Shown: positions 1 through 59,441 of the stretch, piece after piece | Position numbering within the stretch: position 1 is the stretch's first letter | Layout of the letters: each line of letters starts with the position of its first letter | Assembly (NCBI RefSeq): GCF_000143415.4 | Contig: NW_003314329.1 | Location: forward strand, 329,421-393,420 | DNA from: Selaginella moellendorffii | Lineage: Eukaryota > Plantae > Lycopodiophyta | Direction of reading: 5' to 3' | Length of the DNA: 64,000 nt | Notes under the pieces: model-generated | The model's database searches: none | Seen by the model: the letters and a program-made list of their open reading frames with translations, nothing else | Told to the model about the DNA's origin: nothing | Position numbers and translations under genes: made by a program

Positions 1-205
1 AAAAGAAGAGAAATGATAAAAAGCTGGAAGGAATGGTAGGTCTAGACAATGCAAAATGCTAAATCTAAACCAAAATCCTGAAAGGAAAGAACAAAAAGAA
101 AGGAAATGGAAAAAGCTAGATCTAGACGATGCAAAAGCTAGATCTAAACCGAAATTCCAAATCCAAGCACTCCCTAGGGACAATCAAAGGTGCCCCTCAC
201 CTCCA

Positions 206-399
206 TGTAAGCAACCAAAGGGAACGACTTGAGAGACGATCCATGGGGTTCAAATATAGAGGGAAAGGGCCCATGAACAAGAGTGCACCCCCTTTTCCAA
301 TCGGTTAAGGGTCTTGGGATAGTTGGAGTTAAGCGTCCTTGGGTTTGAATAGTACTGGGCTGGGTGATCTCCCGGGAAGTCCAAACTCAGGAGCTTACA
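206..399 (+). mobile_element. Cassandra-type TRIM LTR (194 bp) with 5S rRNA-derived domain
   Basis: Starts TGTAAGC and ends GCTTACA (terminal inverted repeat). Near-identical to the LTRs at 57602 and 58028. Contains a 5S-like segment at 327-382. Followed by a PBS-like TGGTATCGGAGC at 402-413. Confidence 0.9.
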
Positions 400-683
400 T
401 TTGGTATCGGAGCGGTCTCAGGTCCGACTCTGTTGGTTGGCTAAGGGAATCACACCACATGTTGATTGACATCTGGCTGGTCCAGTTTGCTCCCGTTGGG
501 CTCCGACTCTGTTGGTTGGCTAAGGGAATCACACCACATGTTGATTGACATCTGGCTGGTCCAGTTTGCTCCCGTTGGGCTCGACCCGAGGGGTAGGGTG
601 TCAAGAGAGCGGGGCTCTCAGGAGAGCTGCGGCTCTTAGCTTCCGTTCACGAGGGCGTGAACTTGCAGGGAAGCGTGGTGGAT

Positions 684-1473
684 TTATAACACATCTCCGC
701 AAGTCCCAAATGACTTACCCAATCGGTCTGGTCTCCCGAGACATAGCATCGCAAATAATCCTCCAGCTGCCTATTCACCCTTTCCGTTTGTCCGTCTGTC
801 AAGAAGTGTTAGTGCCAACAACTTGACTCAATACCCCATACCTGTCTGTGGGTGATAGGCTGTGCTGAATTTCAACTTGGTGCGATACTGTTCCAGGAGA
901 GTCCTCCAGAACCTACTGGTGAAGATCTTATCTCGATCTGAGATGATCTCTTCTAGTCTTCCCCGCACCCGAACCACTTGTTCGAAGAACAGCTTTGCCA
1001 CACCTTCCGCATCCACCTCCGTTGTGGTGGGTATGAAGTGTGCCATTTTCGAAAATCGGTCCACCACCACAAATATCGCATCAAACCCCTCACTTGGGGG
1101 GAGTCCCGTGATGAAGTCCATAGTAAGATATTTCTACGGGCGATCTGGAATTGGGATGCTTTGCAACAAGCCCCCACTAGCCTTAGTCACGGCTTTTACC
1201 TGCTGACATGTTGGACATGTCTTTACATAGTCTTGGACGTCCTTAGCCATATCTGGCCAATGGTACTTCCTTTTGAGTAAGCCCATCGTCTTGGGCACTT
1301 CACCGTGTCCCGCAAGAGGTCCGTCATGACACTCTTCTAAGGCCACCTTCTTTAGTTCCCCTTTTGGAACATACACCCTCGTTTGCTTGTAATAAATGAG
1401 TCCGTTGCGTTCCGCATAGCCCGTTTTCTCTTCCGTTGGCAGCTCACCTCTCTGGTGAGCTTCCCGCGCCTCT
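684..1473 (-). pseudogene. Ty3/Gypsy integrase fragment (HHCC zinc-binding domain + rve core)
   Basis: CHDGPLAGH...CPTC; MDFITGLP..DAIFVVVDRFSKMAHFIP; IISDRD; AYHPQT/DGQTERVNRQLEDYLRCY. TAG stop at a conserved Trp (1134-1136). 46-nt GT-AG insertion at 796-841. Confidence 0.92.
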
Positions 1474-1569
1474 AAGGGGGTGCACTCTTGTTCATGGGCC
1501 CTTTCCCTCTATATTTGAACCCCACAGATCGTCTCTCAAGTCGTTCCCTTTGGTTGCTTACACTCCACC

Positions 1570-55049: not shown

Positions 55050-57601
55050 CGAAATTCCATCGAGGGCGAGCACGAACAGGCCAAGCGGATGAAGCAGCTC
55101 ATGACGTCGCTCTCCATCAGCAGCAGGGACGCTCCAATGCTGCCCTTGCAGCCATTCATCTGCCCGATCACCCGCGACATGATGCGCAACCCCGTCCAGA
55201 TCGCGTCGGGGCCGAGCGCGAGGCGATCGAGCGATGGTTTGCGGAGGGCAACACTTGGTGCCCGGTGACAAGCGAGGAGCTCCCCACGACGCAGATGAAA
55301 TCCAACTTCGCGCTAAAGCAGTCCATTGCCGAGTGAAGGGAGAGGAACTACGATGCCCGGCTCCACTGTACCGCGCGGTGCCTTCGAGACCAAGTGTATT
55401 GTCCAGGCCATGCGGGACATCCGCATGGTGTATGAGGAGGAGCCACTCAACAAATACAAGGTTGGCACTGTTGCCAATGGTGAAGCAGCTGCACGACGTG
55501 CGGGATGCCGTGGCGGTACGCAAGGAGGCCCTGGGGGCTCTCACGGTGCTTGCTCGTGACACTTTTGAGAACCAGGTAAGTTATTTCTCAACTTTCACTT
55601 TCCTTGCTTGCGGATCGTGCTGCCTGTCTCTTACTTTTTTACGTTTGAGTTTTTGTCGCTTGTGATTGTGCATAAATTTTTTTGTTTTTTATGCTTTCTT
55701 TTGTTACAAATTCGATGAGCTATTGATGATTTTGCTTCTTTCAGGAATCAATGATGAAGGCTAGTAATTTGGGGCGAAGTCGTTGGTTCACCAAGCTAAA
55801 TCTTGGTTTTGGATACTGGCAAGTACGGCCGAAGAAGATATTCCTAAAACTGCTTTTCGTACATTATTTGGTTTGTATGAGTTCTTAGTGATGCCATTTG
55901 GTATAAAAAATGCTCCAGCAACTTTTTAACAGATGATGGATGAGGTTCTTTGTGATATGCCGGTGGTGACTGCTAACTTCATTAATGATGTTTTGATCCA
56001 CTCGAAGGGGACGTGGGAGGAGCATATTTGTGATGTTTGTAAAGTGTTGGATCGGCTACGCGACGTTGGTTTAAAACTGAAGCAGTCAAAGTGTGTGTTT
56101 GGGTCCAAGGATACAGCTTATCTTGGGTATCATATTTCTTGTGAGGGTTTGCAAGTTGATCTTGACAAACTTGTGGCTGTTTTAAAGTTCTCTACTCCGA
56201 AGTGTGTGAATGATGTGCAGCGCTTCTTGGGCAAGGTGCAGTATCTCAGTCATTTTATAGATCATCTTTCTGATCGCACTGCACCATTGCGAGTGTTGAT
56301 AGTTGAGCTGCTGGTCTTTAGCCTCACTCGGCAAAAAGAAGACTTGGGAGAAGCTGTGCTGGTGATGAAGGTCTTGTCTGAGAATCCCAGCACTGCATAA
56401 CTGATCAGGCATGCACAAGGTGCGGTCGTGTTTCTCGTAACTTTACTCGGCTGCGAGGACGAGGACGTTAATTCGAATGTCAAAGACATTCTGGAGAATG
56501 GCAGCGATGACAACGTTCTGATCATGACCGAGGCTAATCTCATGTGGCCTTTGGCAAACAGGCTTGTTGAAGGTAATCCATTTCATTCGATGTTCATTCA
56601 AAACGCTCTTTTTTTCTTTTTTTGCAGGCTCCATCGGATCGAGAATTGTCATGGCAAAGGCACTCGCTGCTATGCACTTGCCAGACTCGAGCAAAACATC
56701 ACTCGCAACGGAGGATGTGTTGGTGTCGCTACTGAGGATGATCGAAAGCCCATAGCGAGAAGAAAATGAAGCAGCTCTAGGTGCTCTCCAAAACCTCACA
56801 TCTGTGCCTGACATCACAGAGACGGTCCTCGATCTACACGGCTGAGCTCTGTCAAGACCGTCGAGGAGATCAAAGTTGGCGCTGCCAGGATACTGGCCGA
56901 TCTTTCCAAGATTGCTGGCGATGCCTGGAGTGGCGAAGACGAGGCAACAACGAACCAGCTCGAGGTCTACATCTACAAGTTCTTGCAGCTCATGGGCTCG
57001 CTCACGCCTGTCGGTGTCCAAAGTTACGTCTTGAGCACTTTCCTCGGCCTGGCCAACGGGAAGAACATCGGAGCCTTCACTAGAGCGAAGCTTTGCGAGC
57101 ACAAGGCGTTGCAAATACTTCTCCCTCTCCTCAAGAATCCGGCTTCGACTCCAAGCAGCGCGGCTCCGACGACTCCAGCTATGGTGGCAGACGTAAGGAG
57201 GCACGCGATGGAGCTGTTTTGCCTGCTGAGCAAGGAATCCAGCCAGGAAGCGTCCGTGGCGATGCGGGAGAGGCCCGAGATAATGGCTGATCTCGTGAAA
57301 AACCTGTGCGGAGAGAACGTCAATACTGGGGATCATCGCAGCATGGAGGATGGCGTCGTGAGGAGCGCTCTGGATCATCACCAGCAAGACGGAGGCAAGA
57401 GCTTACTTCACGTAGTGGCGGCACTGGTGGTGGAGGCCTCGCAGGAAGCTACGACGGTCGAGGTGGCGGTTGGGATCGTTTTAAAGTTCGCCAAGCTCGG
57501 GGTGGAGACCGATCTGGCGGAGAGCGATCTAAACCGCTATGGCCCGCCGCCAGCGTCCAAGGCGGCGGTGGAGGGAATGCCCACCTTCGATCACGGACGA
57601 G
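55050..57601 (+). pseudogene. U-box/ARM E3 ligase (PUB43/44, SAUL1-like) pseudogene
   Basis: PLQPFICPITRDMMRNPVQIASG; AIERWF.EGNTWCPVT..SNFALKQSIAE*RERN (Trp to stop). Frameshifts; ARM-like segments (DDNVLIMTEAN..PL..RL.EG); interrupted by retroelement DNA. Confidence 0.75.
55760..56296 (+). mobile_element. Ty3/Gypsy reverse transcriptase fragment inside the PUB pseudogene
   Basis: GYWQV; [26 protein letters not shown]; degenerate YxDD (FIND); LKLKQSKCVFG; VQRFLG. Confidence 0.88.
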
Positions 57602-58221
57602 TGTAAGCAACCAAAGAGAACGACTCGAGAGACGGTCCATAGGGTTCAAATATAGAGGGAAAGGGCCCATGAATAAGAGTGCACCCCCTTTTCCAATCGG
57701 TTAAGGGTCTTGGGATATTTGGGGTTAAGCGTCCTTGGGTTTGAATAGTACTGGGCTGGGTGACCTCCCGGGAAGTCCAAACTCAGGAGCTTACATTTGG
57801 TATCAGAGAGGTCTCGGGTCCGACTCTGTTGGTTGGCTAGGGGAATCCGACTCTGTTGGTTGGCTAGGGGAATCCCACCACATGTTGATTGACATCTGGC
57901 TGGTCCAGTTTGCTCCCGCTGGGCTCGACCCGAGGGGTAGGGTGTCAAGAGAGCGGGGCTCTCGGGAGAGCTGCGGCTCTTAGCTTCCGTTCACGAGGGC
58001 GTGAACTTGCAGGGAAGCGTGGTGGATTGTAAGCAACCAAAGAGAACGACTTGAGAGACGGTCCATAGGGTTCAAATATAGAGGGAAAGGGCCCATGAAT
58101 AAGAGTGCACCCCCTTTTCCAATCGGTTAAGGGTCTTGGGATATTTGGGGTTAAGCGTCCTTGGGTTTGAATAGTACTGGGCTGGGTGACCTCCCGGGAA
58201 GTCCAAACTCAGGAGCTTACA
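57602..58221 (+). mobile_element. Complete Cassandra-type TRIM (620 bp): two 194-bp LTRs with 5S domain, PBS, 232-bp internal region, PPT
   Basis: LTRs 57602-57795 and 58028-58221 differ at 1 position. TG...CA ends. PBS TGGTATCAGAG (tRNA-iMet type) at 57798-57808. Purine tract before the 3' LTR. TSD ACGAG/ATGAG. Confidence 0.95.
57723..57778 (+). promoter_or_regulatory. 5S rRNA-derived Pol III internal promoter (A box, IE, C box) within the LTR; also at 327-382 and 58149-58204
   Basis: GTTAAGCGTCCTTGGGTTTGAATAGTACTGGGCTGGGTGACCTCCCGGGAAGTCC aligns with plant 5S rRNA GTTAAGCGTGCTTGGGCGAGAGTAGTACTAGGATGGGTGACCTCCTGGGAAGTCC (recalled). Confidence 0.85.
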
Positions 58222-59136
58222 ATGAGCACCTGGCCCTCGACTCGGCACCGATGTCCGCCAGATGCCGTGTAAGCACTTGTACCACCCGGACTATATCCGC
58301 CCCGGATGCTCCTTATGATTCAGGGATCCTTGACCCGCCTTCGATCTCCAGGAAATATAATGCCACGGGATGCAAAATATAATGCCCTGGTCCGATTAAA
58401 GGTACCAGCTATAGCGATCGCGCCGCGCTCGACCCTATCATTTATGCCACGTAGACTGACATGTAACTATATGGATGCAACCGTTGATTTAAGTGTGCAA
58501 TCCGACGGTTAGGAGGCTTATTTTATTTGCGTGCCAACCCTAGAAAACAAAGACCTTGATTAGTGCCCAACCCTACGTCGTTTTGCATATACCCAACATT
58601 GAGAGTGAAGCCCCGAATCACACCATGGTAGGGGGCAAATCCACCTTGTATTCAAGGTTAAAATTCCCATTTCTAGGTGTGTATTTCCTCACATATAACT
58701 TTTAATTATACCATATTGATTGAAGATTGATGGTCTTTTTCGACATTCAAGAATTATAAGACACCACCACCACAATTCACTGCACATTTGTGTTGATATT
58801 CATATCTTTTATGTAGTCCTTGCCACTGCTCGCAAATCCAAGACTAGACAATGCCCATAAGAATGGACTTATTGAGAAGATAATTGGGAACACAATGTAA
58901 GAGAGAGATGACAATTGATGTATGTGGCAACAATGTGAGGGTGAGGAGCATGAGCGCGTTGGATAATCAACACAAGGATCTATAGCCCAGTAGCAAGATT
59001 ACACTGGCAAGTCTGCTCCACCACACAACCTAGTCCAGGCGATTTATCTCCAATAAAATCTCCCAGGAGCTATAGTTGATTCACAAATGGAGTGATTGGT
59101 TAATATTTCTTAGTTTTTGAGAAATACTCCAACGGT

Positions 59137-59232
59137 TAGACGATGCAAAAGCTAGATCTAAACCGAAATCCTAAATCCAAGCACTCCTCAGGGACAATCA
59201 AAGGTGCCCCTCACCTCCACTAATGTGAGTGC
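59137..59232 (+). repeat. Dispersed repeat equivalent to the empty site of the 206-1562 insertion
   Basis: Matches 123-205 and continues directly into C(T/C)AATGTGAGTGC as at 1568-1579, with a single CTCCA. Confidence 0.9.
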
Positions 59233-59441
59233 CTGAATAATAAACTAGGTTTAAAGTGTTTTGTATTTTTTATTTCATTACAATTGAAGATTAATATGGA
59301 GCAATGATTTTACTTGTAAGCACGAATATGCTTTAGTAGTTAGAAGGTTTACTTTCCATTGGCATCAGTAAGAAGTTCCTTAAAGAACTATCTTTCAGTT
59401 TTGTACAAATTTGCTTGCAATATCAAATTAGTTTTCTTCTT

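Follow-up and report, generated by a model that had tools for sequence, protein, structure and literature searches.

A Cassandra–Gypsy composite insertion with two U3 termini inside one 5-bp target-site duplication

In concerted integration assays, integrase can pair two like viral ends in vitro, and fragments of retrotransposon cDNA can be patched into chromosome breaks. Our literature search returned no report of integration through two U3 ends or inverted LTRs. Set beside the two-like-end assays and cDNA capture at breaks, the composite of Cassandra and Ty3/Gypsy sequence described here is a natural plant genomic fossil with a clean target-site duplication (TSD). Composite insertions of LTR elements have previously been ascribed to template switching by reverse transcriptase (RT) between co-packaged RNAs (Sabot & Schulman 2007, PMC1950507; reviewed in PMC6894440). 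Our composite resembles these template-switch products in that several retrotransposon parts lie inside one TSD. In contrast, their parts are all direct and their ends are of the U3...U5 kind (PMC1950507, PMC6894440), whereas here one part is inverted, both ends are U3, and the partners that were joined differ at the superfamily level.

Cassandra elements depend on proteins supplied in trans (PMC7215508), and their autonomous partner has not been found (PMC4079214). The composite shares with the Cassandra TRIM as described (PMC7215508, PMC4079214, 10.1101/2023.07.14.548913) a 5S-bearing LTR, an initiator-Met PBS, a polypurine tract (PPT), TG..CA ends and a 5-bp TSD, but its 3′ LTR is missing, the place being taken by a piece of foreign coding sequence and by part of an LTR in inverted orientation. 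A further point of comparison is provided by Ginger transposons, which are defined by an intact integrase-like transposase, TIRs of ~40–270 bp beginning TGTNR and a TSD of mostly 4 bp, with 5-bp TSDs occurring within Ginger only in TDD-4 and TDD-5 (PMC2836005). For the inverted ends of Ginger, a speculated origin is a pair of oppositely oriented LTRs on either side of an integrase gene (PMC2836005). The composite resembles Ginger in its 89-nt arms starting with TGTAA, in the shortness of its TSD and in enclosing Gypsy integrase-related sequence. Unlike Ginger, it lacks an intact transposase, and its integrase piece derives from an ordinary high-copy Gypsy family. Its TSD of 5 bp is the size typical of plant LTR retrotransposons rather than the 4 bp usual for Ginger, and, again in contrast with Ginger, there is no evidence of copies or excision, the search for copies having covered the 64-kb window (the whole stretch of DNA that was analysed).

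The composite is a 1.36-kb insertion (1357 bp, 206–1562) inside a single TSD. A Cassandra 5′ LTR, PBS, internal domain and PPT are followed by an antisense piece of Gypsy integrase and then by 89 nt of inverted U3 (Table 1), and the two inner joints are referred to below as junction A (Cassandra to Gypsy) and junction B (Gypsy to inverted U3). The order from LTR to PPT had been proposed in the initial annotation of this DNA and agrees with an intact Cassandra copy elsewhere in the window. The same annotation noted CTCCA on both sides of the unit, and direct reading confirmed a perfect match (5/5) between the two copies. An empty-site homologue had also been placed at 59137–59232; when 206–1567 is deleted, the flanks do align to this paralogous sequence without interruption, and the alignment reaches 59240 (~104 columns, 6 mismatches, 1 gap). 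In public sequencing runs, moreover, the flank repeat occurs in many further genomic copies that skip ~1362 nt at the insertion point, and contigs of one run pass from 205 directly into the sequence after the right-hand CTCCA. Duplications of 5 bp are the size made by the integrases of plant LTR elements. The perfect TSD and the continuity of the empty site together indicate that the unit was inserted in its entirety (1357 bp) into an intact target, 5 bp of which were duplicated in the process.

Table 1. Positions of the composite, its target site and the reference Cassandra copy within the window
Feature	Position	Strand	Evidence
Left TSD copy, CTCCA	201–205		Read directly; empty-site alignment
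Cassandra 5′ LTR, 194 bp, TGTAAGC...GCTTACA	206–399	+	96.4% identical to LTR 58028–58221
Only sense-strand run of at least four T in Cassandra (LTR positions 88–91)	293–296	+	Scan for T runs in the intact copy and in the Cassandra part of the composite
5S rRNA-like part of LTR	309–396	+	Rfam RF00001, 30.5 bits, E 6.7e-4, under the gathering score of 38
PBS, initiator-Met tRNA type (TGGTATC...)	402–415	+	Read; aligned with intact copy
Perfect tandem duplication in internal domain, 2 x 79 bp	423–580	+	Repeat search, 100% identity
Polypurine-tract region, end of Cassandra sequence	665–683	+	Alignment with intact copy
Internal fragment of high-copy Ty3/Gypsy integrase gene, zinc finger and catalytic core	684–1473	-	Pfam; structure match
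Right inverted arm, reverse complement of LTR positions 1–89	1474–1562	-	Inverted-repeat search; alignment
Right TSD copy, CTCCA	1563–1567		Read directly; empty-site alignment
Intact Cassandra, reference	57602–58221	+	LTRs 57602–57795 and 58028–58221, 99.5% mutually identical
Empty site, paralogous copy of the flank repeat without insertion	59137–59240	+	Alignment

Every part of 1–1740, flanks included, is a high-copy repeat, a circumstance that favors an assembly artefact in which repeats were mis-joined. The same explanation gains from the junction words, which are listed in no run. Among the contigs listed when four runs were compared with 1–2000 (contigs of ~100 nt), none bridges either inner junction, and a 60-nt query across junction A, represented by only three sampled words and thus short of proving absence, gave no listed run. 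The runs contain only about half of the words of the 1–1740 stretch despite its high-copy repeats, however, so missing junction words prove little. A mis-join should also leave neither a mismatch-free TSD nor precise LTR termini on both sides nor flanks in agreement with an empty site, and we regard an artefact as extremely improbable. The host sequence itself (1–205 and 1563–1742, as well as 59137–59240) is repetitive at very high copy number and contains short internal repeats, AAAAGCTAGATCTAAAC, and contig depth falls sharply at 1742.

The Cassandra part (206–684) aligns to 57602–58028 of the intact copy with 86% identity over 479 nt. An Rfam scan of the window at the gathering threshold returned no match, and the 5S-like part of the LTR surfaces at the E-value threshold only. 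The PBS belongs to what we take to be the initiator-Met tRNA type (10.1101/2023.07.14.548913). In the intact copy the 3′ LTR begins directly after ...GTGGTGGAT, whereas in the composite it is replaced from 684 on, and the 5′ LTR is the only one in direct orientation. A 5S-like LTR and a 5-bp TSD are found together at this locus, and two direct LTRs are not.

The right end of the unit had been described as the reverse complement of the first 89 bp of the LTR, and comparison of the inverted arms (206–294 and 1474–1562) bears this out, with 87 of 89 bases complementary (98%) and a single adjacent dinucleotide (242–243 in the left arm) accounting for the difference. The match to the U3 start continues over 89 nt, far past the 7-bp terminal inverted repeat of the LTR itself, which identifies the right end as U3 and not U5. 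No U5 end or 3′ LTR remnant was left at the right side of the composite in our sequence comparison. The insertion is thus a single one, with a 5-bp TSD and U3 at both termini. The simplest reading, also proposed in the initial annotation, is that two U3 ends were used for integration, and it is supported by the one 5-bp TSD, the empty site and the U3 character of both termini. The U3 and U5 ends are identical over their first seven bases, TGTAAGC, and an integrase reading terminal bases cannot distinguish one from the other over those seven. Judged from these termini, two U3 ends are a plausible substrate for loading by integrase.

Three variants shared by both arms and absent from the 57.6-kb Cassandra copy had been taken to mean that the arms come from the same element lineage. 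The variants are real, and at least one of them is frequent in the Cassandra population of the genome (loose-end consensus at 684, one run). Such genome-wide occurrence assigns the arms to the same subfamily; origin from the same molecule is neither implied nor demonstrated by it. A different history would begin with a normal two-LTR Cassandra insertion that was rearranged later, its 3′ LTR first inverted and then lost in part, with Gypsy DNA taking its place. Any Cassandra insertion would account for the TSD and empty site, and illegitimate recombination occurs in LTR elements (PMC4079214), but this route takes at least four breakpoints, two of them exactly on LTR borders, no trace of the U5 end or the 3′ LTR persists, and the nearest Gypsy source lies outside the window. 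We consider it improbable.

On the minus strand, the border between flank and right arm reads TGGTGGAG followed by TGTAAGC, where the normal PPT/LTR border reads TGGTGGAT followed by TGTAAGC, and 7 of 8 bases agree next to the LTR start. Put differently, the reverse complement of the target sequence CTCCACCA (1563–1570) nearly reproduces the end of the Cassandra PPT. This likeness may be due to chance, or homology with the PPT, and not integrase alone, may have helped to place the right end. It also gives some standing to break repair without integrase, in which a PPT-like 3′ tail of the chromosome would anneal to Cassandra minus-strand cDNA and prime copying of U3, with the rest patched in and CTCCA matching partly or wholly by chance. 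The duplication is nonetheless perfect over 5/5 bases and of a size typical of LTR integrases, and both termini have exact TG...CA ends. Furthermore, beside ACA, at the LTR end, stands the base expected from the target and not that of the PPT, so that the TSD reading still holds. Repair of this kind is very improbable in our estimation.

The initial annotation had the sequence switch at 684 to an antisense fragment of Gypsy integrase, an assignment upheld by minus-strand Pfam matches across 684–1473 (PF17921 Integrase_H2C2, 4.8e-21; PF00665 rve, 7.4e-11) and by the best solved relative of the fragment, the integrase of Ty3 Gag-Pol (7q5b, 7.9e-15). The fragment measures 790 bp (~260 codons), lies antisense to the Cassandra part and is the entire Gypsy content of the composite, which contains no Gag, protease, RT/RNase H or Gypsy LTRs. 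Both the start codon and the C-terminal part are missing, the latter being where a Gypsy lineage such as the chromoviruses would show itself; an in-frame stop at 1134–1136 interrupts the piece, and a 46-nt GT..AG insert at 796–841 (minus strand) breaks the frame. Searching for protein homologues of its 112-aa zinc-finger piece returned no match, a result for which the length filter of the search would account. Contig depth is high across 796–841, from which other genomic copies of the family seem to carry this insert as well. The insert includes a CTAAC-like motif and sits between the conserved HPQT and DGQTE motifs of the integrase core. Other genomic copies of the Gypsy family extend past both junctions, as indicated by loose ends at 684 and 1474, and self-comparison of the 64-kb window found no second copy of 684–1473.

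A fragment in this state does not sustain the suggestion, made in the initial annotation, of a Ginger-type element or LTR-to-TIR intermediate: it is internal, lacks a start and a C-terminal part, contains a stop and a frame-breaking insert, and no second copy of it was found in the window. Membership in a mobile inverted-repeat family, whether Ginger-like or a transition form from LTR to TIR, draws on the 89-nt inverted ends starting TGTAA, the short TSD and the integrase-related insert (PMC2836005). However, the window holds no second copy of the composite, its integrase piece is both incomplete and interrupted, and runs in which high-copy words occur lack the junction words, which argues weakly against a high-copy family. 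We also know of no case in which an LTR-type integrase excises integrated DNA. Among the explanations weighed here, we therefore judge this one the least probable. In the absence of a correctly oriented 3′ R-U5, the normal LTR replication cycle cannot regenerate the composite, which looks like a dead one-off copying accident and not a new kind of mobile element.

Junction A (683/684) lies within 1 nt of the PPT/U3 border, with 1 nt of ambiguity from a shared T. Where the composite enters Gypsy, normal Cassandra copies read on with GTAAGC..., as observed in loose ends. The PPT/U3 border is the site at which RNase H cuts and plus-strand DNA starts, and chance alone would put a breakpoint of a 620-bp element that close (within 1 nt) in ~0.4% of cases. 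This coincidence makes an origin in reverse transcription plausible. A crossover through homology at junction A, between GTGGTGGATTG of Cassandra and GTGGTGAGTTG of the Gypsy family, was considered and rejected, the patch being 2 nt out of register with the joint. Junction B (1473/1474) corresponds to LTR position 88/89 and has 1 nt of microhomology, a shared A; the inverted arm ends within the T4 run, and the junction lies 15 nt upstream of the Rfam 5S match. Microhomology of ~1 nt at each junction fits non-homologous jumps of RT onto template ends and end joining equally well.

We favor, with a probability of roughly 60%, a single event in which the integrase of an LTR retrotransposon, acting on two U3 ends, inserted one aberrant chimeric retrotransposon cDNA. 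We infer that the chimera formed before integration, outside the chromosome. Replication intermediates of Cassandra and Gypsy would have been combined either through jumps of RT from one template to the other or because unfinished cDNAs were joined together. By the jumping route, one cDNA strand would lead from the U3 start, primed at the PPT, into Gypsy and on to the 3′ end of PPT-cut Cassandra RNA. By the joining route, two Cassandra cDNAs would each give a U3 end, and their inner ends would be joined with Gypsy cDNA as filler. The left junction would reflect the PPT/U3 border with its RNase H cut and plus-strand start, and the right junction the sole T4 run of Cassandra, which may be an RNA 3′ end. 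On integrating, the chimeric cDNA would make the usual 5-bp target duplication, and a product with neither a properly oriented 3′ R-U5 nor a working integrase would be immobile; the copy has since decayed where it stands. The template switch between Cassandra and Gypsy suggested in the initial annotation is plausible in light of junction A at the PPT/U3 border, but end joining is equally compatible, and the two cannot be separated from one locus.

Alternatively, two cDNAs may each have given one U3 end in a concerted integration, after which end-joining repair, with no template switch involved, linked the inner ends with Gypsy cDNA as filler. The 1-nt microhomology at both junctions speaks for this course of events, as does a Gypsy piece that is an internal fragment without an LTR; the plus-strand gap of an unfinished cDNA at the PPT/U3 border could, in addition, give junction A. 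It requires two joinings together with the capture of filler, however, and random trimming does not predict Cassandra breakpoints at two notable places, which leaves it, in our view, rather unlikely. As for the age of the chimeric insertion, the arms differ at 2 of 89 positions, and the unit departs from most other genomic copies of its families at dozens of sites, almost all of which are transitions. These differences point to a single old event and not a recent one.

A more specific proposal combines two end-to-end jumps of the Gypsy RT onto 3′ ends of Cassandra RNA, one created by the PPT cut and the other by a Pol III-type stop in T4, with subsequent two-U3 integration in vivo. We consider this conjunction unlikely. 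Plant 5S genes begin GGGTGC and have box A (AGTTAAGCG...) near +50, and the Cassandra LTR has GAGTGC at 281 and AGTTAAGCG at 327. As an idea only, transcription by Pol III from near 281 to a leaky stop in the T run would leave R very short, and under such a short R the inverted arm would be the 3′-terminal piece of the RNA that remains after the PPT cut. If the end-to-end jumps were real, they would map the 3′ end of Cassandra genomic RNA and imply a very short R. They would also place Cassandra RNA inside particles of the Gypsy family and so name the long-sought helper.

Cassandra itself carries no genes, and a chimera that formed before integration would put Cassandra and Gypsy nucleic acids together at reverse transcription. 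The Gypsy family as helper is nonetheless only a lead, because Gypsy cDNA captured by end joining would look identical. Co-packaging, and hence the identity of a helper, is informed only by the template-jump route, and the joining route is silent on both. A natural insertion with two U3 ends would constitute direct genomic evidence for a plant integrase accepting two like ends. The shape of the composite is that of the first step imagined by Bao and colleagues from an LTR element to an inverted-repeat transposon (PMC2836005), although the copy here is dead.

The intact Cassandra copy offers two further observations. A different duplication, of ~27 bp, occupies the same place in its internal domain (57820–57873) as the tandem duplication of the composite, and this site seems prone to slippage. 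Finally, the 5-mers flanking the intact copy (57597–58226), ACGAG and ATGAG, agree in 4 of their 5 bases.
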